Positions 1-48,009 of a stretch of DNA of 48,872 bases are shown one piece after another. The translations under genes and the position numbers were made by a program. The notes under the pieces were generated by a model. The model did no database searches. It was given only the letters and a program-made list of their open reading frames with translations, and was not told the DNA's origin. Source of the DNA: Octopus bimaculoides (taxonomy: Eukaryota); contig NC_068997.1 in assembly GCF_001194135.2 (NCBI RefSeq), forward strand, positions 41,763,891 through 41,812,762. The letters run 5' to 3'. Position 1 is the stretch's first letter. Every line of letters begins with the position of its first letter.

Positions 1-69
1 GACTGCCATGTTGGCTTGGCGATAACTATTAATTTCCAGTACCGCTGCCGTAGTCTCCTTTAGAGAGAC

Positions 70-105
70 ATAGAAATATTAATATCTCTATATATATATA
101 TATAC

Positions 106-142
<37 letters not shown>

Positions 143-207
143 TGAATATTAATATCTCTATATATATATACATATATATATATATATACACACATATATA
201 TATATTT
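70..207. repeat. (TA)n microsatellite with a short internal tandem duplication of ATATTAATATCTCTATATA
   Basis: Direct reading; the ATATTAATATCTC anchor occurs twice within the TA tract. Confidence 0.9.
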
Positions 208-267
208 GGTACGAAACCAAAGAAAATGTCGTTTAACATGGAGGACTTATAGGCCTCCGTGGTGCAG

Positions 268-273
268 TTGTAA

Positions 274-305
<32 letters not shown>

Positions 306-362
306 GCAGTTACAACTGCGACTACAGCAGCAACTGCAACAGTAACAACAAAACCAACAGTT
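268..362. repeat. (CAG/CAA) trinucleotide low-complexity tract
   Basis: Direct reading; explains the poly-Ala/Val ORF 233..427. Confidence 0.85.
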
Positions 363-389
363 GCTGGAATTAGTATTGAAGGAATATAA

Positions 390-1030
390 AAATACTTCGG
401 ATTCTTACTCGCCAGACAGCGTAGCAAATTCAGTTGAAGAATCTAGTTATAAACCAGAAGAAAGGATTATCTTCTCTCCATATTTTCGAAAATACGAAGA
501 AATCTTCAAAGAAAATGTAAAAATTGGTCTGACGAGAAAAAAGTACGACTACTTTTAAGATAGTTATTCCCCGCCGAACATGAAAAATTTAGTAACCAGG
601 TGAGATTTATATCGATGAAACAATTTTTATCGAAAATTTTCAGTGAAAGACGTTTTCTGTTCATTACACGCTGATAATGTTTAAATTTGGTCAAAAAAGA
701 TTATGAACATTTCGTCTCCTATGCTGGGGTTGTTAACAGAGAGTGTGAAAAATGCAAATTAAATAAATTAACCCCGGACAACTTCAAATGTCTAATTTTT
801 GTTCCAGGACTTACTGCGAGCAAAAATGCAGACATACGTTCCCGGATATTATCAAAATTAGAACAGGACCAAAACTTAACTATACAGGCAGTAGCAGAAG
901 AATGTCAGAGGATTACAACATGACGCAGATAAAATTGAGAAAAAAGATTGCTCTCGTATTCACGCGTGTTGACCGGTAACGGATAAGAAAAAAAGTAAAA
1001 ATGTCAAAACCGAATCCATTTCATGGGTTT
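390..1030 (+). mobile_element. Degenerate Gypsy/Ty3 LTR retrotransposon gag region (K02A2.6-like), with frameshifts and stops
   Basis: Stitched frames read DSVANSVEE..YKPEERIIFSPYFRKYEEIF..CLNLVKKDYEHFVSYAGVVNRECEKCKLNKLTPDNFKCLIFVPGLTASKNADIRSRILSKLEQDQNLTIQAVAEECQRI. This matches the K02A2.6-type gag signature (FKCLIFVxGL..DxxIRxRxLxKLE..LT...AEECQR) from recalled family knowledge. Confidence 0.8.
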
Positions 1031-1031
1031 T

Positions 1032-1249
1032 ATGAAAAATAAAAACTTTAACCATCTCTTTTCCTGGACCAATTGGCTTCTGACTTATTTTAGCAATTAA
1101 GATAATTTGCTAGGTGAAGTCTTTATCAACAGGTACACCCAAGACTACCTGTTGATAACGACTTCACCTAGCAAATTATCTTAATTGCTAAAATAAGTCA
1201 GAAGCCAATTGGTCCAGGAAAAGAGATGGTAAAAGTTTTTATTATTCAT
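1032..1249. repeat. Long inverted repeat: 104-bp arms (1032-1135 / 1146-1249), 10-nt loop, 3 mismatches
   Basis: Arms checked base by base as reverse complements. Confidence 0.97.
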
Positions 1250-1452
1250 TTCGTTCCTTTCGAGATTTTATCCCTAATTTTGTGGTTCTAGAACCTAGCT
1301 GTTCTTTCTAGCGTAAATGGATTCCTGTTATGTATTTAAATATACACTGTACCTTATGAGTAACTCATAGTCTTTGGACTAAACTTTTATACGCTAGGCC
1401 ACTTGGAGGTGAAAATGTTTATTAATTTTCATTTCCCTTTGATATGATTAAG

Positions 1453-1491
<39 letters not shown>

Positions 1492-1516
1492 TTTATGAAT
1501 ATATATAGACTATACC

Positions 1517-1898
1517 TTAAATGATAGAGAAAAATGTGCTCATAAATTGTTTATGTCATAAGAATCTAGACACTTTGAGAAAATGTGAAATAATTCGTTT
1601 TTAACTGTAGAGCTCGAAGTAGATAAAGTTATAAATAATAGCATGTAAATGTTGGATTAAATATCCCTTCGGATGAGGAAAGTGGAAGGGATCCTCATGA
1701 GACGCGAACCCATATCTATAAAGAGGACAGATGTTATACCATTGGACCAAAGCAATCCTTCGAAATTCTCTATCCATTTCAGAATCTTTGTTCTTACCGG
1801 TGGGCGCTGAAGAATTCGATGTAGAAAAGCTACTATACGTACAAGGTTGAAAATTTAAATGATAGAGAAAAATGTGCTCATAAATTGTTTACGTCATA
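1517..1898 (+). repeat. Direct repeat of 44 bp (1517-1560 and 1855-1898, 1 mismatch), part of an older tandem duplication whose second copy is interrupted by a SINE
   Basis: TTAAATGATAGAGAAAAATGTGCTCATAAATTGTTTAYGTCATA occurs twice; TATAAATAATAGCA and GATGAGGA..GAAGG also recur at about 1630-1690 and 2113-2183. Confidence 0.85.
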
Positions 1899-1899
1899 C

Positions 1900-2105
1900 T
1901 ATAGGTACAACGTTTAAAATTTGGGAATAGGAGCTAGCCGATTACTTCGACCCCAGCACTCAACTGGTACTTATTTTTATCACTTTCGAAAGGATGGAAA
2001 GCAAAGTCGACCACCGTTGAATTTGAATTCAGAATGTTAAGAAAGAAGAAACTCCGCTAAACATTTTGTTCGGCTCACTGACAATTCTGCCAGCTCACCA
2101 CCTTG
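1900..2105 (-). mobile_element. SINE family A (GGCGAGCTGGCAGAA head; GCCTTTCATCCTTTCGGGGTCGATAAA-TAAGTACCAG core)
   Basis: Homologous to copies at 2991-3137, 7262-7404, 15590-15720, 18737-18945, 22915-23122, 44590-44785, 48010-48140 and 48740-48872. Confidence 0.85.
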
Positions 2106-2308
2106 GAAACGTATAAATAATAGCACATAAATGAATGTTAATAAATGCCTTGATTATGAAGTAGATGAGGATTAGTCGAAGGTCATAGAAGCGCCTGAGT
2201 TCACCTGACGGAAGAAAGAATCAAAGCTAATGATATCAATATCAGTTCAATAAACTTATTTCAGTTCAGCTTTCATGGATAAAAACCAAGGGAGAAAACA
2301 TTTATAAA

Positions 2309-2739
2309 CTCTTTTACTCTTTTACTTGTTTCAGTCATTTGACTGCGGCTATGCTGGAGCACCGCCTTTAGTCGAACAAATCGACCCCGGGACTTATTCT
2401 TTGTAAGCCTAGTACTTATTGTATCGGTCTGTCTTTTGCCGAACCGCTAGGTTACGGGGATGTAAACACACTAGCATCGGTCGTCAAGCGATGNNNNNNN
2501 NNNNNNNNNNNNNNNNNNNNNNNNNNNNNGGGGGGGGGGGGGCACAGACACACAAACACACATACATATATATACATATATATACGACGGTCTTCTTTCA
2601 GTTTCCGTCTACCAAATCCACTCATAAGGCTTTGGTCGGCCCGAAGCTATAGTAGAAGACACTTGCCCAAGGTGCCACGCAGTGGGACTGAACCCAGAAC
2701 CATGTGGTTGGTAAGCAAGCTACTTACCACACAGCCACT
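2309..2739 (-). mobile_element. SINE family B (tRNA-like head, internal microsatellite, (AGTAAAAG)n tail)
   Basis: Near-identical to 12000-12385 and 40841-41140. The head in sense orientation reads GTGGCTGTGTGGTAAG...GGGTTCAGTCCC (A/B-box-like). Confidence 0.9.
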
Positions 2740-2814
2740 AAAGTTCGTAAATGCTTTGAAATACAACGTTGTATTACTGAAGCTATAAGGATACGATTTC
2801 AAATACTGGGTAGT

Positions 2815-2990
2815 ACATAGCTCATCATTGATGACAAACTGGACAACTACTTGCGTTGTCCAGTTTGGAAAAGAATCTGCGTGGTCATTCAACCTGCTAA
2901 AAATAGCAACCAAATCTCCCTCAAATTACCCCCTTTTTAAGAAACATTCAGCGACGTGCCTTTAGATATCTAAAAAGACTGTCTTTTTAT
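2815..2990. repeat. Dispersed repeat family H (CTGCTAGAAATAGCAGCCAAATCTCCCTCAAAT core); further degenerate copies near 4075-4440, 14030-14160, 16870-16990, 18330-18480, 25800-25990 and 34790-34980
   Basis: The same core motif recurs in both orientations. Confidence 0.65.
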
Positions 2991-3137
2991 TTCTTTATTG
3001 CCCACAGGGGGCTGAATATAGAGGGGACAAACAAGGACAGACAAAAGGGTTTAAGTCGATTACATCGACCCCAGCGCATAACTGGTACTTATTTAATCGA
3101 TCCAGAAAGGATGAAAGGCAAAGTCGACCTTGGCAGA
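2991..3137 (-). mobile_element. SINE family A, 5'-truncated 3' portion
   Basis: Contains GTCGATTACATCGACCCCAG and AAAGGATGAAAGGCAAAGTCGACC, shared with the other A copies. Confidence 0.85.
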
Positions 3138-3387
3138 TCAGAGAGAGATCTACCTGATCAAGGCTGACCTGGGACAAAACAATAACTACTAATTCGATTC
3201 ACTCTTTTCAATAAATGTTGTCAACCCACGAAATTAAGGTCTTATTCATAAATGAAACACTCACATATTGGAAAGGTTTGTATCCTAAAAAGAAATATTT
3301 TTTTTCCTCATTTAATATATCCTCGATTCTAAGCTACTTGCATGTTTTAAGAGGAGAGTAATATAATATTTTTACGTTCACCAACAG

Positions 3388-3467
3388 CTGCTTCTGTTTT
3401 ACATCCACTGGATACATAATCCACGGCGTCCATGCCAAGAAGAGTGATGTGGAAGACATGAATTGCA
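3388..3467 (+). CDS. Internal exon of a thyroglobulin type-1 repeat (thyropin-like) protein; encodes CFCFTSTGYIIHGVHAKKSDVEDMNC
   Basis: Acceptor TTTTTACGTTCACCAACAG|C and donor GCA|GTAAGT; 80 nt, phase 2 to phase 1. The CxCx4G...C pattern is the second half of a thyroglobulin type-1 domain. Splices in frame to the exon at 5256. Confidence 0.75.
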
Positions 3468-3494
3468 GTAAGTATATTTTAAGGCAATTATCTA

Positions 3495-3885
3495 GTTGTT
3501 GTTGTTGGCACTCTGTCGCTTACGACGTCGAGGGTTCCAGTTGATCCAATCAACGGAACAGCCTGCTCGTGAAATTAACGTGCAAGTGGCTGAGCACTCC
3601 ACAGACACGTGTACCCTTAACAGTAGTTCTCAGAGATATTCAGCGTGACACATTGTGACAAGGCTGACCCTTTGAATTACAGGCACAACAGAAACTGGAA
3701 GTAAGAGTGAGAGAAAGTTGTGGTGAAAGAGTACAGCAGGGTTCGCCACCATCCCCTGCCGGAGCCTCGTGGAGCTTTAGGTGTCTTCGCTCAATAAACA
3801 CTCACAACGCCCGGTCTGGGAATCGAAACCGCGATCCAATGACAGCGAGTCCGCTGCCCTAACCACTGGGCCATTGCGCCTCCAC
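3495..3885 (-). mobile_element. SINE family C, full length (tRNA-derived head, (CAA)n tail)
   Basis: High identity to 10345-10726 and 47461-47845; flanked by AATTATCTAG / AATTGTCTAG, a 10-bp TSD with 1 mismatch. Confidence 0.92.
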
Positions 3886-4604
3886 AATTGTCTAGTAAAT
3901 ATAGAAATAAAGGTCAGTGTTTCCTTCCTTAATGAAATTTTATATTTACATCCAGCTTCGTATTTTATGTCCTGAATACGCAGTTTTCTCTGATATTGAA
4001 ACGCCAGTCTATTTGATCACTAAACATCACTTTATCATTATACAAGAAATTAGGAAGCCACTATTTGGTTACTTCACCAAATGCAAATAGCCAAATTGTC
4101 CTCCTTACGACATAAAAACAGGAAACAGGATAATGTAGTACTTGATGTACTCGTAAAAGGGTAGACGATTACCGCTAGAATGCCTTTGATCTCAGGTTGG
4201 TTCCAATAGGGTTTACCTGGGGCTAAGCAACAACACACGTATACACAGACCGAGCTAACTAGAAAACCTCTGCGCAGTTGCTTCATTTACTAAAAATAGC
4301 AACCAAATACCCCTCAAATTACTCCTTGCTGCCTTAAATAAGAAATGAGACATTAGTAATCCTACATACCGTAAAAATAGATGGGGTGGTCGCAGCTGGA
4401 GTGCTTTTCAACAAAGATTCGTCCCTTCAGTATTGAACTTGGACTAAATCACAGCAGATATTATAGTTAAAGGATTAATTCAAATCCAAGTAAATGTGCT
4501 GTTGTTTTTATATGTCTTAGTCAGGTAGAAGAAACTGTGATCATCGACTCTGCAGATCCACTAGGACTTATGAGATTGTAAGTATATATACTAATTACCA
4601 GGCA

Positions 4605-4710
4605 TGGTTATATAGTTAAGTAGCTCGCTATAAAACCACATGCTTTCAGGCTTGGTTCCACTGCGTGACACTTTGGGAAAATGTCTTCAGTCATAGCCTC
4701 GAGTCAACCA
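4605..4710 (+). mobile_element. SINE family B head fragment, degenerate
   Basis: GGTTATATAGTTAAGTAGCTCGC...GGTTCCACTGCGTGACACTTTGGGAAAATGTCTTC resembles the B head. Confidence 0.6.
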
Positions 4711-5255
4711 ATAAGTTTGCTAAAAATAAGTTTTAGTTAAAAACCCGAATTAACATGAATTCCATGATCACGAAGTTGTACTGCAATTTTTATTTATTAT
4801 CTTGCAATAAATCCATGCTGTATGTTTATTGTTTAGGTCCACGTTCAACAGCTTATCCATGCTAATTCGACTAAAATCAAATGGTGATAATTATCAAACG
4901 CTGGAGAGAAGTTAAATATAAATATCTACCTAAATTATGTTTTTTAACGTATCAATCATTGTTACCATTGGAAAAAATTATACTTTCTGCTGATGACGTT
5001 CAAAGATACAGAAATTTAGATTAAGCAATTCCACTGGCGCCGCTAAGCACTTTTCATCCGCTACTATGCTTTTTAGAACTATATGCCTATACGTGATACT
5101 GTCTCGAGATGAATACTTCAGTTATATGGCTTTCTACAGTTTATACACATTAAGTAAGAAATACAGATTGTTATTTTGAATTAATACTGCTTCTGTTGCT
5201 AATAACTAATATTTATTTATTTATTTATTCATTCATTTATTTATTTATTTTCAAG

Positions 5256-5440
5256 ACTGTGCTGTTGACAAAAAAGAAAGCGAATTGAGAGGAGATAGGT
5301 TAAAGAAATTTCGGTGTCATAAAAACGGCAATTATAAGAAAATTCATGTCAAAAACTCAATTGTTACTGCGTAAATATATGGGGAATTCAGGTATCACTT
5401 AAAGTGCTTAGGTCAAAGATCTATTCACTTCCATGCTAAG
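5256..5440 (+). CDS. Last coding exon of the thyroglobulin type-1 repeat protein; contains a -1 frameshift at about 5345-5347 (pseudogene allele or assembly error)
   Basis: Acceptor TTTATTTTCAAG|AC and donor TAAG|GTAAGT. Reads (N)CAVDKKESELRGDRLKKFRCHKNGNYKKI, then after restoring one base (ATT CA- TGT) continues CQKLNCYCVNIWGIQVSLKVLRSKIYSLPC, stop TAA at 5437-5439. This gives a complete C..C-x2-NG-x-Y-x3-(Q)C-x4-CYCV-x3-G..C domain. Confidence 0.8.
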
Positions 5441-5889
5441 GTAAGTAGAACGTTGTGTTTACAAAAAAAATCTAAACTTCAGAGGTGATTTGGCTAAGTC
5501 GCTGAGTTACTGCGAATGTTTTAATGAATTTCTAGCTAGGTATTTCTCTGTATTTCATTTAAAGTGTTCGGAGATGCATTTGATTGACAAGATTTTGGGA
5601 AAAATCATAACAGCCATTTAAAACATGGCCGAGTGATTATGAAGACTGTTTCAGAATCATAAGCTCTCATGTTAGAACACTCTGCGTGGAATCTTGAGGA
5701 AGTTACTTTTACTTCAGCTTCTGGTCTAGTCAAACTTTGTGAGTGAAACTGAGTAGGTGGAAACTGTGTGGAAGCCCGTAGGGTGAGTTATACTTGTAAT
5801 TTAAAGACCCAACCTTTGTTACATATTTTGAGACACTGATTCCGTTCAAGAATCAGGTTAAATGTTTAACGAATCAATGAAATGTTCAT

Positions 5890-6045
5890 CCACTTAAATG
5901 ACTAATTCATTGAACAGATTTGATCTTGAGAAGTCAAAATGAAGCCTTCACTCTTTGCCTTCAGCCCTGAGCTTCGTAGCCACTGACGGGTGTACTTATG
6001 TTCAACATCAGCTTCTTTGTTACAGGCCACGTCAGCTAAAGGCCA
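5890..6045 (-). mobile_element. Short R4/Dong-like LINE fragment
   Basis: Translates NKEADVEHKYTRQWLRSSGLKAKSEGFILTSQDQ, homologous to the SLRSSGIKAETEGFLIAAQD segment of the element at 7584-9002. Confidence 0.75.
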
Positions 6046-6362
6046 TGTATTTGCCATGCAGAGGTTTCTGTTCCCACCTACCAACCAATCGTCCATGCTC
6101 TTTTTTTTTTTGCCATTAATTTTTCTCTCTTTACAACAGCGATCGTGATTTCAGCTCCTAGACCGGGTGGTGCATTGTGTTCTTCTGCAAAACACTTTGT
6201 CTCACGTTGCTCTGCGATCACTTCGACACCTGATGCGTGGTACGCCGTGCAACCGTTCAGATGACGTCGATATGATAGAGAGAATGAGCTTAAACAAATC
6301 ATTTGTGCAGGTTGTTCGGAAAAGGCTGAACGCTCATACGTCATCTTCGGCAGGAGAGTCCA

Positions 6363-6427: not shown

Positions 6428-7261
6428 TCTCCATGTAAATCCAGACCCCTGACCTCATCTCCTAACCGAACGGAANNNNNNNNNNNNNNNNNNNNNNNNN
6501 NNNNNNNNNNNNNNNNNNNNNNNNNNNNNNNNNNNNNNNNNNNNNNNNNNNNNNNNNNNNNNNNNNNNNNNNNNNNNNNNNNNNNNNNNNNNNNNNNNNN
6601 NNNNNNNNNNNNNNNNNNNNNNNNNNNNNNNNNNNNNNNNNNNNNNNNNNNNNNNNNNNNNNNNNNNNNNNNNNNNNNNNNNNNNNNNNNNNNNNNNNNN
6701 NNNNNNNNNNNNNNNNNNNNNNNNNNNNNNNNNNNNNNNNNNNNNNNNNNNNNNNNNNNNNNNNNNNNNNNNNNNNNNNNNNNNNNNNNNNNNNNNNNNN
6801 NNNNNNNNNNNNNNNNNNNNNNNNNNNNNNNNNNNNNNNNNNNNNNNNNNNNNGAGTACTTTAGCCGAGAGGACCACCCAGGGTTTTCCCCCAAACCAGC
6901 TCTCCAGCTCTCCCTCTCTCTCTCAAACACATGATCACACATAGACACCCACAAAAACACAAGCACACACCCATCCTATCGGGGACGGATTACACGGATT
7001 CCGATTCCGATTCCAACACGTCCCAAAGTGAGGAGGAAGAAAACAAGCCAGAACAATCTAAAAGAAAGCTCAGGAGAAAAAACACCGGATCCATACCAAC
7101 ACAAACATCGGACAACACATAAAGTACCGTCACACAGACAACAAACCCTCCAGCTCAACAACCGTTTACACAACAAAAGATATCACCACCACCACAACCC
7201 CACCTCGCCCCCAAAAGAAAGCATTCGGAAGAACGGTTAAATTCTCAATTATTATTATTAT

Positions 7262-7585: not shown

Positions 7586-9002
7586 GGTAGTCTTATTTTT
7601 ACCACGTGCTTTCACTGCATTACCGAGCGCAGCTCTGTGTGCCTTGGGTTTGTGCTGTGGTTTGTTGTGATGCTCTCATTTTTACTGTAGTGAAAGTGTT
7701 TTAAGTAGGATGTGTGGGGTGCCTAGTACTGCTATTTTCTGTATGTTTTATATATTTGTAAGTCTTAGTGTTTTGGTTATGTATTTGTCAGAATGTATTT
7801 TTATCATACCTATTTCGCCAACTATTATAGGAATTGTTTCTGTTTTTAGGTTCCACATTCGAGTTACTTCAATTTCCAGATTTTTGTATTTTGAAAGTAT
7901 CTCTGTTTCTTTTAGAGAAATGTTGTCATCTATTGGTATTGATACATCAATTAGAAGGCATCTTTTTTCTTGGTGATCTCTGACAACTATATCCGGTCTA
8001 TTACCCTTAATTTCTCTATCTTTGTGTATTGGCATATCCCATAGTATTGTGCTTTCTCGTTTTCTGTGACCTTTTCTGGCGTGTGCCTATACCTTTTTTC
8101 TGTTATCATTCCATAGTGTTTGCATAGCTGCCAATGTATGTAGGTCCTAGCTCTGTCGTGTCTGTGAATATATTCTTTCTTAGTCAGGACTGGGCAGCCA
8201 GAGATAATGATTTATTGTTTCTTCTCCATCACCACATATTCCGCAGTTACTTGTTATGTTTCTTCTCTTTATATGTTTCTGGTTATTAATTTCTGGTGGG
8301 GAGGCTATGGTCTTGTGCTGCAATTAAAAATCCTTCAGTCTCTGCTTTGATTCCTGAGCTTCTCAGTGATCGTTGGGATTTTGCTTCGTCTATTTCTTTT
8401 CTGTTTAGCTTAACCCAATATTTTCCATGAAGGGACTTTGCTTGTCATCTTTTTATCATGATCCGTTGTTGTTCCAGTTTTAGTTTAGGTTTCAGTTGTT
8501 CTACAGCTTTTGTTGTTTCTTCTTTTTCTACATCGTTGTTAGGTACTATGTCTTCTTTTTTTGTATTTTTCAGCTTCTTTAAAGAGGGAAAACAGTTTTT
8601 TTTTTTGTTTTTTTTGCTCATGTCTTGTGGCTATTTATATCAGTCTTCCTTGTTTCTGAAGTAAGTATTTGTGTAATCCTAAGGTGGTTATTTTATAATA
8701 GTTTTCTAGCTGCATAAGGCCTCTACCGCCTTCAATACGTTGTATATATAACCTTTCTATGTCAGTATTTTTCTTGTTTTCATGTCTACTTTGAGTGGCT
8801 CATTTAGAGTCCAGTTAAGAATATTGTCGCTGTAACTTACAACTGGGACGGCTAGAGTGTTGATACATATTATCTTGTTTTTCGCATTGGGCTCTATTTT
8901 TAGTATTAATCTAACTTGTCTATAGCATTCCTTTCTTGTATTCTCTTTCATTTGTGTGTGTTGTGTCGTATCTACTTCATTGATTCTTACGTATGTCTGG
9001 CC
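7584..9002 (-). mobile_element. 5'-truncated, degenerate R4/Dong-clade non-LTR retrotransposon (RT C-terminus, CCHC knuckle, restriction-like endonuclease, 3' UTR)
   Basis: Minus-strand frames give RINEVDTTQHTQMKENTRKECYRQVRLILK..NAKNKIICINTLAVPVVSYS, then WKDKPLHGKY..SGIKAETEGFLIAAQD, a C-x2-C..ETINH..C knuckle, and DREIKGNRPDIVVRD..KRCLLIDVSIP.D.NISLKETE.LSKYKNLEIEVTRMW (PD..D-x-x-x-P..K..KY REL motif). (TAA)n lies on both sides. Confidence 0.92.
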
Positions 9003-10344: not shown

Positions 10345-10726
10345 GTGGAGGCGCAACGGCCCAGTGGTTAGGGCAGCGGACTCACGGTCATTGGATCGCG
10401 GTTTCGATTCCCAGACTGGACGTTGTGAGTGTTTATTGAGCGAAAACACCCAAAGCTCCACGAGGCTCCAGCGGGGGATGGTAGCGAACCCTGCTGTACT
10501 CTTTCACCACAACTTTCTCTCACTTTTACTTCCTGTTTCTGTTGTGCCTGTAATTCAAACGGTCAGCCTTGTCACACTGTATCACGCTGAATATCCCCGA
10601 GAACTACGTTAAGGGTACACGTGTCTGTGGAGTGCTCAGCCACTTGCACGTTAATTTCACGAGCAGGCTGTTCCGTTGATCGGATCAACTGGAACCCTCG
10701 ACGTCGTAAGCGTCGGAGTGCCAACA
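10345..10726 (+). mobile_element. SINE family C, full length, with 11-bp TSD ATCCATACACA
   Basis: TSD at 10334-10344 and 10727-10737; A-box GGCCCAGTGGTTAGGG and B-box GGTTTCGATTCCC. Confidence 0.95.
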
Positions 10727-11234
10727 ATCCATACACAAGTATTGTTAATACTTCATATTCTTGACACCCTTAATCCATTTTTGAATGGATTTTTCAAAGA
10801 AAAATGTTCCTGTCTAGCTTGGGAGATTTAGTTCGTACTTCACTGAGACCTGCAAAGCAAAAAAACGAGTTTGATTCCTCAGTAATAAAGTGTTAATTAT
10901 CATCAGTAGCAGCAGCATCTTTTAACGTTTATCTTTCACGCTGGCATGGATAGGACGGCTTGCGAGAATCTGACATTGACAAGGCTGTTTTGATTGATCT
11001 ACAATATACAATACCATCAAGGTATAAGATTGAAAACTGTTGACCCATTCCTGTGGAACATAAGACAATATTTTTGCTGACTTTTCTGAACAATAGAATT
11101 ATTGCATATTTTTTTCTCCCTTTTTCTTGATCTTAACTTGCATTTCTGATTGTGGCCTTTTCCTGTATTTCAAATAAACCTTAACCTACATTTCTGATCA
11201 GTTGTGATTTCGTCTTATATTGCAGGATGAAATC

Positions 11235-11999: not shown

Positions 12000-12385
12000 A
12001 CTCTTTTACTCTTTTACTTGTTTCAGTCATTTGACTGTGGCCATGCTAGAGCACCGCCTTTAGTCGAACAAATCGATCCCAGGACTTATTCTTTGTAAGC
12101 CTAGTACTTATTCTATCGGTCTCTTTTGCCATAAACACACCAGCATCGGTTGTCAAGCGATGTTGGGGGGACACACACAGAGACACAAACACATACATAC
12201 ACATATATATGTACATATATACGACGGGCTTCTTTCAGTTTCCGTCTACCAAATCCACTCATGAGGCTTTGGTCGGCCCGAGGCTATAGTAGAAGACACT
12301 TGCCCAAGGTGCCACGCAGTCGGAATGAACCCGAAACCATGTGGTTGGTAAGCCAGCTACTTACCACAAAGCCACTCCTGCGCCT
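12000..12385 (-). mobile_element. SINE family B, near full length
   Basis: Matches 2309-2739; the head ends in GCCACTCCTGCGCCT. Confidence 0.92.
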
Positions 12386-13265: not shown

Positions 13266-15284
13266 TTAATGGTTTTTTTCCACTGGTCTCCCAAAATGTA
13301 CAACAGCAAGGTGTATTATTTACAGGAAATGTAAATATGACATCATCATTTTGTTCAAACAGCATCATGCGAAGACACGAAATGGTGTTACGTAATGAGA
13401 TGATTGGGTGCGGCTGTTTAGACGCTAGCATTTTGGCACGGCTAACTGAACATAGAACCTGTTTTGGTGTCAGTACTTTTTGGCACGGAAAGCAAACGCG
13501 TATGCGTAGAAATATACACATACAGACAGAAAGTGAGATGAAAAGGAGTGAGAGAGAGATATAACAATTTATTGATTGAACATGATTAACATAAACACTT
13601 TCCTCTCCTAATATACAGAAAGAGGAATATATTTACACGCATAAACATAGAAAGAGATGGAGAGAAATAGAATGAAAGGAAAGGGAAAACTAGAGAAACA
13701 TTTAAATGTCCGATGTCAAATAATTCGAAATGGAATCAGCAACGTTTTGGCGGTGCTAAATCAACTGTGCCTAAACGTTCATAATTAATATGTCAACATT
13801 TAAATAAACGTTTTTCCTTCTACTCCTACTGTTCTTATTAATTCACTAACATTTTCTTATCCTTTTTCACCTCATTTTTTCCCTTCACCTCACTCTCGAC
13901 TTTACCTGCTTCTCCTCATCCCATCACTCCTTCATCCTTTCTTCTTGCACTGTTTCTCCTACCACTCTTCTATAATAATAAACGCGAAACTTTGTCTGCC
14001 CGGGATCCCTCTTTCTCAGTCTACATTTGCTCTACATAGACATATTATACCCTTTTAGAATCAGGATGATCCCGGGATTGAAAATCTGCCATTCATTTGG
14101 TTCTTGAACAACCGGCATTGGGATCTGACTTAAAAAACCATTTGAGTTGCTATTTCTAGCAGGTAAAGCTTGACTGATTCACGTCACCTTGGTTGGCGTT
14201 TGTCAGATGACGTCAGAGATCAAGGGGGAGATAAATGACATTCGCTTCGTTAATTTCACGTCGAGATAAGAACTTTGGGACAAAATGGCCCACAGTTGGA
14301 ACACAGTTGGAACACAGTTTGGGACTGGAACAATAAAACGATTGCATTACACAATTAATTCTCATCTGTCCTTAATTAACCTCTGATCAAACACCACTGA
14401 GACATAGTCATTATAGTTTTGGGCTGCAAACCCAATTAGCCCTCACAGGAGCTAATTTAAAAGTCCGCACGGTGTGCGGCTTTTAAGTTAATCATNNNNN
14501 NNNNNNNNNNNNNNNNNNNNNNNNNNNNNNNNNNNNNNNNNNNNNNNNNNNNNNNNNNNNNNNNNNNNNNNNNNNNNNNNNNNNNNNNNNNNNNNNNNNN
14601 NNNNNNNNNNNNNNNNNNNNNNNNNNNNNNNNNNNNNNNNNNNNNNNNNNNNNNNNNNNNNNNNNNNNNNNNNNNNNNNNNNNNNNNNNNNNNNNNNNNN
14701 NNNNNNNNNNNNNNNNNNNNNNNNNNNNNNNNNNNNNNNNNNNNNNNNNNNNNNNNNNNNNNNNNNNNNNNNNNNNNNNNNNNNNNNNNNNNNNNNNNNN
14801 NNNNNNNNNNNNNNNNNNNNNNNNNNNNNNNNNNNNNNNNNNNNNNNNNNNNNNNNNNNNNNNNNNNNNNNNNNNNNNNNNNNNNNNNNNNNNNNNNNNN
14901 NNNNNNNNNNNNNNNNNNNNNNNNNNNNNNNNNNNNNNNNNNNNNNNNNNNNNNNNNNNNNNNNNNNNNNNNNNNNNNNNNNNNNNNNNNNNNNNNNNNN
15001 NNNNNNNNNNNNNNNNNNNNNNNNNNNNNNNNNNNNNNNNNNNNNNNNNNNNNNNNNNNNNNNNNNNNNNNNNNNNNNNNNNNNNNNNNNNNNNNNNNNN
15101 NNNNNNNNNNNNNNNNNNNNNNNNNNNNNNNNNNNNNNNNNNNNNNNNNNNNNNNNNNNNNNNNNNNNNNNNNNNNNNNNNNNNNNNNNNNNNNNNNNNN
15201 NNNNNNNNNNNNNNNNNNNNNNNNNNNNNNNNNNNNNTTTTCTATTCAATAAGCAGAAAGTGTATTGAAACCCAGCGTATATAT

Positions 15285-36419: not shown

Positions 36420-36650
36420 TCTTTTATCTTTTACTTGTTTCAGTCATTCGACTGTGGCCATGCTTGAGCACCAGCTTGAAGAATTCTAGTCAAATGAATC
36501 AACCCCAATACTTATATATTCTTTTTTTAAAGCCTGGTGCTTATTTCATCAGTCTCTTTTGCCAAACTGCTGACTTACGGGGACATAAACAAACCAACAC
36601 CAGTTATCAAGTGGTGAAAGTAGATGAACATAGATGCAATGGCACTCACA
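36420..36650 (-). mobile_element. SINE family B, 3' half
   Basis: TTTTACTTGTTTCAGTCATTCGACTGTGGCCATGC core. Confidence 0.8.
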
Positions 36651-37109: not shown

Positions 37110-37430
37110 AGCTGTCCATTGGTTACAACAAAGAGAGTTTCAGCTGGTCTGATCAACAGAACAGCTTGCTCATAAAATTAACATTAAAGTGGCTGAGCAC
37201 TCCACAGACACATGTACCCTTAACACAGTTCTCAAGGAGATACAGTGTGACACAAGTGTGATAAAGCTGGCCCTTTGAAATACAGGTACAACTCATTTTT
37301 GCCAGTTGAGTGGATTGGGGCAAAGTGAAATAACTATCTTACTCAAGGACACAACACATCGCCAGGAATTGAACTCACGACCTTATGATCATGAGCTGAA
37401 TACCCTAACCACTCAGCCACACACCTTCAG
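37110..37430 (-). mobile_element. SINE family C variant
   Basis: Aligns with 27528-27845. Confidence 0.8.
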
Positions 37431-38225: not shown

Positions 38226-39089
38226 NNNNNNNNNNNNNNNNNNNNNNNNNNNNNNNNNNNNNNNNNNNNNNNNNNNNNNNNNNNNNNNNNNNNNNNNNNN
38301 NNNNNNNNNNNNNNNNNNNNNNNNNNNNNNNNNNNNNNNNNNNNNNNNNNNNNNNNNNNNNNNNNNNNNNNNNNNNNNNNNNNNNNNNNNNNNNNNNNNN
38401 NNNNNNNNNNNNNNNNNNNNNNNNNNNNNNNNNNNNNNNNNNNNNNNNNNNNNNNNNNNNNNNNNNNNNNNNNNNNNNNNNNNNNNNNNNNNNNNNNNNN
38501 NNNNNNNNNNNNNNNNNNNNNNNNNNNNNNNNNNNNNNNNNNNNNNNNNNNNNNNNNNNNNNNNNNNNNNNNNNNNNNNNNNNNNNNNNNNNNNNNNNNN
38601 NNNNNNNNNNNNNNNNNNNNNNNNNNNNNNNNNNNNNNNNNNNNNNNNNNNNNNNNNNNNNNNNNNNNNNNNNNNNNNNNNNNNNNNNNNNNNNNNNNNN
38701 NNNNNNNNNNNNNNNNNNNNNNNNNNNNNNNNNNNNNNNNNNNNNNNNNNNNNNNNNNNNNNNNNNNNNNNNNNNNNNNNNNNNNNNNNNNNNNNNNNNN
38801 NNNNNNNNNNNNNNNNNNNNNNNNNNNNNNNNNNNNNNNNNNNNNNNNNNNNNNNNNNNNNNNNNNNNNNNNNNNNNNNNNNNNNNNNNNNNNNNNNNNN
38901 NNNNNNNNNNNNNNNNNNNNNNNNNNNNNNNNNNNNNNNNNNNNNNNNNNNNNNNNNNNNNNNNNNNNNNNNNNNNNNNNNNNNNNNNNNNNNNNNNNNN
39001 NNNNNNNNNNNNNNNNNNNNNNNNNNNNNNNNNNNNNNNNNNNNNNNNNNNNNNNNNNNNNNNNNNNNNNNNNNNNNNNNNNNNNNNNN

Positions 39090-39245
39090 GGCAAAAGAGA
39101 CCGATAGAATAAGTACTAGGCTTACAAAGAATAAGTACTAGGCTTACAAAGAATAAGTCCTGGGGTTGATTTGTTCAACTAAAGGTGGTGCTCCAGCATG
39201 GCCGCAGTCAAATGACTGAAACAAGTAAAAGAGTAAAATAAAAAG
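39090..39245 (+). mobile_element. SINE family B 3' end with a 22-bp tandem duplication (AGAATAAGTACTAGGCTTACAA x2)
   Basis: Direct reading. Confidence 0.88.
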
Positions 39246-40178: not shown

Positions 40179-40840
40179 AACAATCTTTTTTAAAACACTT
40201 TTACTTACTAGCATTTTTTTTATTTAGTGTGGGGGGGGGGGTTGCCCATATATATATATATATATNNNNNNNNNNNNNNNNNNNNNNNNNNNNNNNNNNN
40301 NNNNNNNNNNNNNNNNNNNNNNNNNNNNNNNNNNNNNNNNNNNNNNNNNNNNNNNNNNNNNNNNNNNNNNNNNNNNNNNNNNNNNNNNNNNNNNNNNNNN
40401 NNNNNNNNNNNNNNNNNNNNNNNNNNNNNNNNNNNNNNNNNNNNNNNNNNNNNNNNNNNNNNNNNNNNNNNNNNNNNNNNNNNNNNNNNNNNNNNNNNNN
40501 NNNNNNNNNNNNNNNNNNNNNNNNNNNNNNNNNNNNNNNNNNNNNNNNNNNNNNNNNNNNNNNNNNNNNNNNNNNNNNNNNNNNNNNNNNNNNNNNNNNN
40601 NNNNNNNNNNNNNNNNNNNNNNNNNNNNNNNNNNNNNNNNNNNNNNNNNNNNNNNNNNNNNNNNNNNNNNNNNNNNNNNNNNNNNNNNNNNNNNNNNNNN
40701 NNNNNNNNNNNNNNNNNNNNNNNNNNNNNNNNNNNNNNNNNNNNNNNNNNNNNNNNNNNNNNNNNNNNNNNNNNNNNNNNNNNNNNNNNNNNNNNNNNNN
40801 NNNNNNNNNNNNNNNNNNNNNNNNNNNNNNNNNNNNNNNN

Positions 40841-40936
40841 TCTATCGGTCTCTTTTGCCGAACTGCTAAGTGACGGGGACATAAACACACCAGCATCGGT
40901 TGTCAAGCAATGCTAGGGGGACAAACAGACACACAA

Positions 40937-40989
<53 letters not shown>

Positions 40990-41140
40990 TACGACAGGCT
41001 TCTTTCAGTTTCAGTCTACCAAATCCCCTCACAAGGCTTTGGTCGGCCCGAGGCTATAGTAGAAGGCACTTGCCCAAGGTGCCACGCAGTGGGGCTGAAC
41101 CATGTGGTTGGTAAGCAAGCTACTTACCACACAGCCACTC
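40841..41140 (-). mobile_element. SINE family B (3' end lost in a gap)
   Basis: Matches 2400-2739. Confidence 0.9.
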
Positions 41141-42062
41141 CTTTTAGTTTTTGCAGAGCACAAATTCGCAAAAATTTTCTGAAAATTCCTCAAAATAAAA
41201 AAAGTTATGTGGGTGCATAACGTTATTGGGTGCTTAAAGCAGAATTTTGCTGAGACTTTTTCATAGATTTTCTTTATATTTCTATAATTTTGCAATTGGT
41301 TTGCAAAATTCTCATCAGGAAGAGGAGGATTCTGTTAAGCCATATTTATTTACAAGATTTAGAAGTCAAGAACATCATATGAATGTAGTTAATACTTTTT
41401 CCTAAGTACATTATTAATGCACAGGAATTAGTGTATTATCATATGGAAAAGGTTTATACAATTTGATGGCATATAATTAGATAGTAATATAATTTAGACT
41501 ATATCCATGTAATCACATTTTCTGTTTTCCCATTTCTGAACCTTGGTTGTTACTCAACTGGTTCTCATGAAAAACTTTTACAAGTTAGCCTGCAATTTCT
41601 AGAGATAATCCCTATATTTCAGTCTTTAGAACTAAACGTAACTTCCATATAAAATACATGAAACTAACAATAAAAATAAAGAATTAAAATGAATGTTAAA
41701 AGTTCGTTACTTTTTCAGCGTCCGTTTTCTTTTCTAACATAAATTACATCTATACTTGTACATTTTATAAATTATAGATTAGAGAAAATTCTATGTTGCC
41801 ACGAATTCGTTCACTTTTCTCGAAGAGTAGAAAACATCTGTCTTTTTTATTCAAGTCAGAATATTTAAATCTGAAGAAATGTTAATTCAACGTTGAATAT
41901 CTGAAATCACCGGCCAAATGGTGTTTACGTAATTAACACCGACTTCCTTAAACAGCTGGCAGCTTAATTAGAGTCGCTAATAACAAACCAAGGGAGGTAA
42001 TTCTTCAGTCAAGGTCTTGCTTAAATGTTCTGTTTATTGGTTAATCGCCATTAATTTCCCGC

Positions 42063-42592
42063 ATGTTTGGGCGCTGTTTGACACGGTTGAGGCCGATACG
42101 GAACGTCCGGATATGCTTCTTGAGCAAAACTGAACCCTGTTACTGCTGCCTTTCACAAGAACAAGATCCTACGGTTGCTAAAACTTGTCCGTTAGCATCG
42201 CTCAATACTATCAAATCGCTACATACTGCTATTGCATATTTTTGTCCGTGTCAACCGCAAAAAGAACTTAGGATGAGACAACTGACTTTCGACAACCAGG
42301 CACTTAAGTGTCTGCCATTTGATCCTTCGGACGATGTTAAAACGCAGAGATCTGTTCCTAATGCATGTTTTTCCAAGGCACAACCGACCCCTGTCGAGAA
42401 CCCGGTGATGGTTGCTTATTCTTCGTCTGCTTTAGCCCTGCTGGGGTTAAGTGTTGAGGACATTGAGACAAATGAGGCCGTAGAATATTTCAGTGGGAAT
42501 AAAATCATGAAAGGCTCAGAACCAGCTGCCCATTGCTATTGCGGTTATCAGTTTGGTCTATTTTCGGGTCAACTTGGAGACGGAGCTGCTAT
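42063..42592 (+). CDS. SELENOO: First coding exon of selenoprotein O (protein adenylyltransferase SelO, mitochondrial); phase-2 intron follows, remaining exons lie beyond the window
   Basis: LTFDNQALKCLPFD..RSVPNACFSKAQPTPVENPVMVAYSSSALALLGL..EYFSGNKIMKGSEPAAHCYCGYQFGLFSGQLGDGAAM is the SelO/YdiU N-terminal signature. Donor AT|GTAAGT at 42593; Arg-rich, acid-free N-terminus. No YLGEV-type next exon was found before 48872. Confidence 0.95.
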
Positions 42593-43543
42593 GTAAGTAT
42601 TAAAGCACTTTATTAAAACTTATATAACTTCTGGACGAATCTATTCGTAGTTTTTATATTCTGTGTTAATTGCGTTTATTCCCGCAAACCCAATTAACAT
42701 TTACCACGCTCTTTCCCTATTGCTTTTGGTTCATCTGTCGAACCTTTTTTTAGAACCCATAGTATTCAATTATAAGTTATAATGAATTCAACAGTTGTAA
42801 AAGTAATTGTAGAAATGTATTAACGATTTTTACCAGTCATTTTAGCAGTGACGGAATGTTTATTGAAAGTTACTTGGTATTGTTACGAGTAAACATGGTA
42901 AGCTGACGGTGGTCCATTGTCGACAAACAATAAACAGTGAAGTTAATGGGTTTAAATACGTTTGCATGACATGGTGAGAAGTAGCATAGAACAAAGCCCT
43001 TCTGATGAGGGAATACAAGTTGTTGTTTATTTCTGTTGACCTTGTCATCAAGGGTTTTATAGCGGCGACCATCCTGTCTTTGTTTATTATAGGCATAGAG
43101 GATTTAATACGTCCTTTCTAAGTTATTACGACTTGTTCTCAAACGGTGCACTGCAGCGCGCTGATGCGCAGCTAGGCGTGTCTAGGTGAGCTGCGGATTT
43201 ATAAAAATGTAATTAAAAGCTTTTAGAAACTCCATTGTAAAATGCTTCCACAATTTAAAAAAAAAAGGCGTATTATACATGATTTTGTGGTAAAGAATTA
43301 TAATCAATTAAAATAAAGTAAACAATAGCTTTCTATAGTTTTCTTTTTATGTTTAGCTTTAAAAACAGCTGTTGTTTTTAAAACTTGCAGTGCGCTTCTA
43401 ATTTCCGTACAAAATGCTCCAGTAATGTTTTTGCTTGGTCTCCAATGCGTCGTCATTTCAAAATAATTGTGAATCACTTTGTTTGATTGAAGAATATTCG
43501 ACTGCTTGTTCTAGCGACCGTCGCTTCCCTCCTTGTTATCACC

Positions 43544-47460: not shown

Positions 47461-47845
47461 TTTTGTTGTTGTTGTTGGCACTCCGTTGCTTACGACGTCG
47501 AGGGTTCCAGTTCAACGGAACAGCCTGCTCGTGAAATTAACGTGCAAGTGGCTGAGCACTCCACAGACATGTGTACCCTTAACATAGTTCTCGGGGATAT
47601 TCAGCATGTCACAGTGTGACAAGGCTGACCCTTTGAATTACAGGCACAACAGAAACAGGAAGAAAGAGTGAGAGAAAGTTGTGGTGAAAGAGTACAGCAG
47701 GGTTCACCACCATCCCCTGCCGGAGCCTCGTGGAGCTTTAGGTGTTTTTGGTCAATAAACACTCACAACGCCCGGTCTGGGAATTGAAAAAGCGATCCTA
47801 TGACTGCGAGCCACTGCCCTAACCACTGGGCCATTGCACCTCCAC
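47461..47845 (-). mobile_element. SINE family C, full length, with 12-bp TSD ACACATACAAAC
   Basis: TSD at 47449-47460 and 47846-47857. Confidence 0.95.
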
Positions 47846-48009
47846 ACACATACAAACACACACTAACATTTTGTGAAATAGCTGCTGAAATAATTTCCAG
47901 TTTAGTGTCCTGTTTTGTAACACTAGCAGCATTTACAAAGACATTGTGGTTATAGGCCAGAAATTTGGGGTAAGAAATTAGACAGTACCACCAATGCTAA
48001 TACTTGACT

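Follow-up and report, generated by a model that had tools for sequence, protein, structure and literature searches.

Among the proteins that carry thyroglobulin type-1 (TY) modules, equistatin and the p41 fragment are tight inhibitors of papain-like cysteine proteases. Other TY proteins, such as SMOC and testican, are built differently, with other domains lying between their TY modules. Secreted TY proteins are already known in octopus, where they occur in saliva, ink and mucus. One of them, TRINITY_DN12299, comes from the posterior salivary gland proteome of Octopus vulgaris; it is 227 aa long, has a signal peptide, shares 30.6% identity with equistatin and 42.5% with a 'saxiphilin-like' protein of Pomacea, and groups with the 75-aa O. 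bimaculoides model A0A0L8GGY2 (PMC7693380). The identity between an octopus salivary TY protein and the spider U24-ctenitoxin is 25.4% (PMC7693380). Ink and skin mucus of O. vulgaris also contain a protein named 'thyroglobulin isoform X2' (PMC10142993, PMC11431876), whose peptides include CETDGTFSAVQCHGSVCYCAHTDGTR and GFCGCCDICIK (PMC10142993).

We analyzed a stretch of 48,872 nucleotides from the genome of O. bimaculoides (hereafter the window, at its full length) and found two exons of TY type on its forward strand, at 3388-3467 and 5256-5440. Our favoured reading, to which we give a probability of about 55%, is that they belong to a disabled 3' fragment of a tandem TY gene. The TY identity of the exons and their structure are well supported; the pseudogene status of the copy, its secretion, its inhibition of proteases and its membership of the octopus secreted TY proteins are what we infer. 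The window is AT-rich, with a GC content of about 21-41% over 2-kb windows, and it contains many microsatellites and interspersed repeats. It is interrupted by 11 N runs (6476-6853, 14496-15237, 24532-25165, 26612-27153, 31602-32175, 38226-39089, 40266-40840 and four shorter ones) that amount to 4463 N, or about 9% of its length; such runs could conceal small exons.

Exon 1 (3388-3467, 80 nt) encodes the C-terminal half of a TY domain, as judged from its translation, CFCFTSTGYIIHGVHAKKSDVEDMNC, and from its splice sites. It is entered in phase 2 and left in phase 1, and its borders read caacag/C at the acceptor and GCA/GTAAGT at the donor (the slash marks the splice point). Domain 1 is thus split by an intron ahead of its CxC motif, and not every module of this gene is encoded by a single exon. 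Intron 1 (3468-5255, 1788 nt) starts with GTAAGT at 3468 and is followed by exon 2 (5256-5440, 185 nt), which holds one full TY domain spread over two reading frames. The acceptor of exon 2, ttttcaag/AC at 5256, is preceded by a strong, long pyrimidine tract (82% Y; about 1% of the AG sites of the window attain 80% Y). Splicing of the two exons creates the junction TGC A/AC TGT, an in-frame Cys-Asn-Cys in which the first residue is the last cysteine of module 1 and the third is the first cysteine of module 2. The TY modules therefore stand head to tail with a linker of one residue, and approximately 1.4 TY domains are visible in the window.

The donor sequence GTAAGT occurs 17 times on the + strand of the window (0.38 per kb). 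Three of these copies coincide with features of interest, namely the exact 3' ends of both TY pieces (3468 and 5441) and the end of a selenoprotein O (SelO) exon (42593). The longer strings GGTAAGT (5440), AGGTAAGT and AAGGTAAGT are each unique to the end of exon 2 as far as the + strand is concerned. We conclude that the GTAAGT sites at the ends of the TY pieces are real splice donors, present or past. A reading made from the sequence alone, before this analysis, had proposed two exons with strong splice sites that join in frame; the exons, the sites and the Cys-Asn-Cys junction all stand, but the peptide that it derived from them spans two frames. It had also remarked that the gene was absent from the list of open reading frames, which is correct and trivial for exons of only 80 and 185 nt.

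Intron 1 has some content of its own. A 57-nt candidate pseudo-exon on the + strand (4521-4577) has the acceptor-like ttatatgtcttag on one side and a GTAAGT donor on the other. Two of its frames are open, one of them reading SGRRNCDHRLCRSTRTYEI; when the stretch is read in the phase 1 that comes in from exon 1, its second full codon is TAG. This stretch may be due to chance, or it may be a decayed or poison exon. A copy of a SINE-like repeat also lies in the intron (3490-3890), about 25 nt downstream of the exon 1 donor.

In order to search the joined peptide against domain and structure databases, we placed an X at the frame break, so that no base was restored. The X-stitched peptide matches profile positions 26-56 of 67 of the Pfam family Thyroglobulin_1 (PF00086), and its score of 25.6 bits (E=8.1e-6) exceeds the gathering threshold of 20.6 bits; this match spans the X, and only the peptide stitched across the frameshift passes. 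None of the three pieces taken singly gave a TY match, and the significance depends on joining two frames. Among proteins of the PDB, the same peptide finds human thyroglobulin (6scj_A, E=2e-8), two more thyroglobulins and saxiphilin (8d6g_A, E=0.011), through alignments that pass along C..(G)NY..(x)C....C(W/Y)CVN.WG. Over its two frames, domain 2 has the six-cysteine pattern C..(17)..C...G.Y...xC....CYCV...G...(16)..C, and exon 1 has CFCF...G....G...C. The tryptophan of the core motif is replaced by tyrosine in domain 2 and by phenylalanine in exon 1.

We also performed a swap test, in which the N-half of domain 2 was joined to various C-terminal pieces and scored by PF00086. Joined to exon 1, the N-half obtained 24.3 bits (profile positions 26-64 of 67), and joined to its true C-half it obtained 24.2 bits; no PF00086 match was seen with the N-half alone, with reversed exon 1 or with the reversed true C-half. 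These scores identify exon 1 as the true C-terminal half of a TY module. As a control for the choice to join two frames, we scanned all six-frame segments of the window with a rough TY profile, which was made of human domain sequences and was used for scanning alone. Domain 2 ranked first and third with its two halves, and exon 1 ranked sixth. As a frame-switched collinear pair, the halves scored 15.7 bits. In 60 shuffles of the window that preserved its dinucleotides, no score came up to this value (maximum 14.4, median about 5).

That the likeness arose by chance in AT-rich DNA without coding function would agree with the lack of significance of the single pieces, whose rough-profile scores lie inside the shuffled range, and with the fact that the frames had been picked by eye in the sequence-only reading. 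Against chance stand the PF00086 score above the gathering threshold, the E value of the best PDB match, the paired score that no shuffle attained, and the reversed controls carried by the swap test; the rare GTAAGT also marks the precise end of each piece, and the splice phases agree with each other. We therefore consider this explanation highly improbable and close to refuted. The assignment of the exons to TY modules, as made from the sequence alone, is borne out by the PF00086 score (25.6 versus 20.6 bits), the PDB thyroglobulins and the swap test, and the PF00086 comparison that had been suggested as a check of the stitched peptide gives a result above the gathering score, at 25.6 bits.

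The TY domain of exon 2 is not read in one uninterrupted frame, as a 1-nt frameshift lies somewhere within 5338-5346. Its N-half, CAVDKKESELRGDRLKKFRCHKNGNYKKI, is encoded at 5258-5344 and its C-half, CQKLNCYCVNIWGIQVSLKVLRSKIYSLPC, at 5347-5436, both on the + strand and in different frames. The frame that enters from exon 1, read from 5258, gives GNYKKIHVKNSIVTA at its end, i.e. CAVDKKESELRGDRLKKFRCHKNGNYKKIHVKNSIVTA, followed by a stop at 5372-5374, and CQKLNCYCVNIWGIQVSLKVLRSKIYSLPC with its own stop (5347-5439) sits in another frame than this read-through. Comparison of the two frames with the sequence confines the frameshift to the interval 5338-5346, which begins after the last stop that closes the downstream frame (5335-5337) and ends before the codon of the third cysteine (5347-5349). 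It falls in the codons just ahead of the third cysteine, and the broken codon is the one that had been written as a glutamine in parentheses. The quoted peptide cannot be taken as a single frame, since this "(Q)" covers the frameshift. An RGD triplet (ELRGDRL) is encoded at 5288-5296 on the + strand, in the first loop of TY domain 2, and is probably fortuitous.

The TAA of the incoming frame (5372-5374) comes 9 codons past the frameshift, so that four of the six cysteines of domain 2 are lost and two are kept. It lies 66 nt upstream of the exon 2 donor. By the usual 50-55-nt rule, nonsense-mediated decay would be expected to act on a spliced transcript of this gene. Besides the single frameshift, no stop interrupts exon 1 or either half of domain 2, and all cysteines, the G.Y and the CxC are kept. 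The site of the frameshift contains no long homopolymer, and the nearest assembly gap is more than 1 kb distant, which makes a gap-closing artefact less likely. Rescue of the frame by a small intron was considered and rejected, as the halves of domain 2 lie too close together for a GT...AG intron to fit in; programmed frameshifting was likewise set aside, as inspection by eye of 5333-5349 revealed no slippery heptamer.

A second stop is found in the downstream frame. Only one codon, the TAA at 5437-5439, stands between the last cysteine and the donor, and one further base separates it from the latter (GTAAGT at 5441-5446, context AAG/GTAAGT). Exon 2 measures 185 nt and would measure 186 nt with one more base, running from phase 1 to phase 1. 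A symmetric phase arrangement is expected of shuffled modules in modular extracellular proteins; in the open literature, we found no paper that treats the phases of introns in TY modules. The position of the stop, right in front of a perfect and phase-matched donor, suggests that exon 2 is an internal phase 1-1 module whose linker codon has turned into a stop. Exon 2 thus looks like one of the inner modules of a gene that is, or once was, longer, and not like a last exon. It could also be a last coding exon followed by an intron in the 3' UTR, which is the less common arrangement. The sequence-only reading had taken this TAA as the end of the gene, a view that its position 1 nt before the only GGTAAGT of the + strand makes less likely.

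Under the favoured reading of a disabled copy, the ancestral gene would have consisted of tandem TY repeats of the thyropin or equistatin-like kind, encoding small, disulfide-knotted, secreted modules. Exon 1 would supply the last half of one module, and exon 2 would formerly have been a symmetric phase 1-1 exon with one whole module. A 1-nt frameshift ahead of the third cysteine would then have led to an early stop that leaves domain 2 short of four of its six cysteines, and the linker codon between the last cysteine and the perfect donor would have become a stop. If intact, each module would presumably be a wedge held by three disulfides and would obstruct the active-site cleft of papain-like cysteine proteases, by analogy with p41 and equistatin. 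We favour a disabled copy because the frame is broken away from homopolymers and gaps, because a stop precedes a phase-matched donor, and because no partner exons are visible. Three observations count on the other side: there is only one lesion, whereas more decay would be expected of a pseudogene that died long ago; an assembly or haplotype error would likewise appear as a single indel; and the TAA at 5437-5439 could be a true stop with an intron in the 3' UTR. A remainder as clean as this would be expected if the inactivation is very recent, if the copy is a null allele or if the assembly is simply wrong at this site.

The same observations bear on the main alternative, which is in essence the view of the sequence-only reading, namely that a live gene missing from the annotation encodes a small secreted protein of tandem TY modules here. 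In this case, the frameshift would be an assembly error or a null allele and the TAA at 5437-5439 a true stop followed by a 3'-UTR intron. Consistent with a live gene are the single lesion, the preservation of the six cysteines and core motifs of domain 2 across two frames, the strong splice sites, the presence of secreted TY proteins in the salivary gland, ink and mucus proteomes of octopus (PMC7693380, PMC10142993), and the gap-rich draft state of the window. However, the frameshift lies outside any long homopolymer and more than 1 kb from the gaps, and a stop pressed on a perfect phase-matched donor would be unusual for a last coding exon. Neither a start codon nor a signal peptide is present in the window, and the collections searched hold no matching protein or ORF. 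On this evidence, we regard a live gene as somewhat unlikely. A more specific version, which we consider unlikely, would be a lineage-specific octopus thyropin missed by annotation, characterized by an unusual C(F/Y)C core and the RGD of domain 2, whose product might enter saliva, ink or mucus by secretion and there inhibit proteases or bind toxins, the frameshift being an artefact of assembly or allele.

The rest of the gene was sought throughout the window. In 1-3387, we found no start codon, signal peptide exon or N-terminal half of domain 1, in line with the earlier remark that the upstream exons are absent from the window; these parts may lie beyond its 5' end or in the small gap at 2494-2529. 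Searches of both strands of the window by regular expression, self-tblastn, blastn and the rough profile detected no other TY pieces, and a scan for splice-flanked ORFs gave no convincing downstream coding exon before about 42 kb. The proposal of a small secreted two-domain thyropin is accordingly not sustained, given that the frame of domain 2 is broken, that about 1.4 domains are present and that the window has no signal peptide. The salivary or defensive role that had been proposed as possible, like an inhibition of proteases, would follow from analogy and from the octopus proteome studies (PMC7693380, PMC10142993).

The same scans bear on whether the exons come from a larger mosaic gene of the extracellular-matrix or IGFBP-like type (SMOC, testican, nidogen, or an IB-plus-TY protein), the remainder of which would lie outside the window or in gaps. 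The donor after exon 2 implies further exons, and the modules are not all single-exon, as the intron before the CxC of domain 1 indicates. The GFCGCCDICIK peptide of the octopus 'thyroglobulin isoform X2' also points in this direction, since it resembles an IGFBP-type N-terminal motif. On the other hand, the one-residue link between the TY modules is equistatin-like and unlike SMOC or testican, and no other coding exon or domain was detected on the + strand between 5.4 and 42 kb. In six-frame segments and splice-flanked ORFs of the same strand (1-42 kb), we saw no Kazal/follistatin, EF-hand, EGF/YWTD or IGFBP N-terminal domain, although small exons and 4.4 kb of N could hide some. Moreover, the unrelated SelO gene begins at about 42.3 kb. 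Membership of a mosaic gene thus appears improbable.

The SelO gene (selenoprotein O, a protein adenylyltransferase) is represented by its first coding exon on the same strand as the TY exons (42045-42593, coding from about 42350 to 42592). This exon matches Pfam PF02696 with 35.7 bits, reads EPAAHCYCGYQFGLFSGQLGDGAAM at its end and is followed by the GTAAGT donor at 42593. Its best database relative, the ENA metagenome-assembly contig L001, is only 70% identical; the SelO exon is all that this contig has in common with the window, and no TY exon was found in it.

Most of the other recognizable sequence of the window is repetitive. The SINE-like repeat of about 390 nt that occupies part of intron 1 recurs at 10345-10727 (opposite strand) and 47465-47846, the full copies being 92-95% identical, and partial copies lie at 27530-27696 and 37133-37292. 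One end of it looks tRNA-like by eye; Rfam and ARAGORN tRNA scans made no calls, the SINE-like repeat included. A second abundant interspersed repeat (2280-2700, 12000-12332, 36420-36611, 39130-39238, 40843-41101 and elsewhere) often adjoins (CA)n or (TA)n microsatellites and assembly gaps; it resembles what we take to be a common octopus repeat, and the repeats of the window are presumably of octopus type. Remnants of retroelement ORFs are found at 678-920 (+), 7751-8086 (-) and 28201-28632 (-). A pooled query of retroelement and SINE-derived ORFs gave matches of up to 74% identity, each covering about one fifth of the query; some of them carry reverse-transcriptase Pfam domains, and contigs of GCA_024449705.1 and GCA_029940505.1 are included.

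Protein databases were searched in two ways. A word-indexed search with the X-stitched peptide returned no candidate protein, and an exhaustive HMMER search, for which the exact 33-aa C-half was used, gave just four proteins, all of them repetitive junk. No annotated or predicted protein that includes these exons came out of either search. For four ORFs of the window (5066-5179, 5902-6096, 4074-4286 and 2647-2913), no occurrence in public assemblies is on record. The searched collections seem to lack both the source species and its close relatives. The negative protein searches agree with a disabled copy but carry little weight, because even the conserved SelO exon finds relatives of at most 70% identity and because these four ORFs are off record.

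A dead copy would be a further case of decay in a common family of secreted domains, met here in a draft genome full of repeats. If the copy is alive, it would be an unannotated addition to the TY proteins of octopus salivary gland, ink and mucus and a candidate protease inhibitor, and it would open no new question. In either case, the TY exon pair illustrates that peptides stitched by eye can conceal frameshifts.

Compared with known systems, the best solved-structure matches of the window peptide are the TY repeats of vertebrate thyroglobulin and the TY insert of bullfrog saxiphilin. In both, the TY modules lie inside large, unrelated host proteins, and the likeness to the window is at the level of the domain only. 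The 'thyroglobulin isoform X2' of O. vulgaris provides another comparison: its peptide CETDGTFSAVQCHGSVCYCAHTDGTR aligns without gaps to the window segment CHKNGNYKKIxCQKLNCYCVNIWGIQ of domain 2, with agreement at the C, G, aromatic, C, CYC and G positions and in the four-residue spacer, but with an identity of only 8 of 26 residues. The same octopus protein yields GFCGCCDICIK, to which the window has nothing similar. TRINITY_DN12299 of O. vulgaris, compared here by its description, is a secreted multi-TY protein and represents the kind of gene to which the window exons would belong, except that the window copy is frame-broken.

Thyropins, among them equistatin, the p41 fragment and the salmon egg inhibitor, are secreted TY-domain inhibitors of papain-like cysteine proteases or of cathepsin D. 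With respect to equistatin and other thyropins, the window differs in having only 1.4 modules, in the replacement of the tryptophan of CWCV by phenylalanine or tyrosine, in its broken frame and in the absence of a signal peptide; neither a secretion signal nor a complete ORF, as a thyropin would have, was found within the window. In contrast, equistatin of Actinia equina and the p41 invariant-chain fragment share with the window the six-cysteine TY module of about 60 residues and its QC...CxCV core, and the modules of equistatin follow each other head to tail with very short linkers, like the one-residue link found here.
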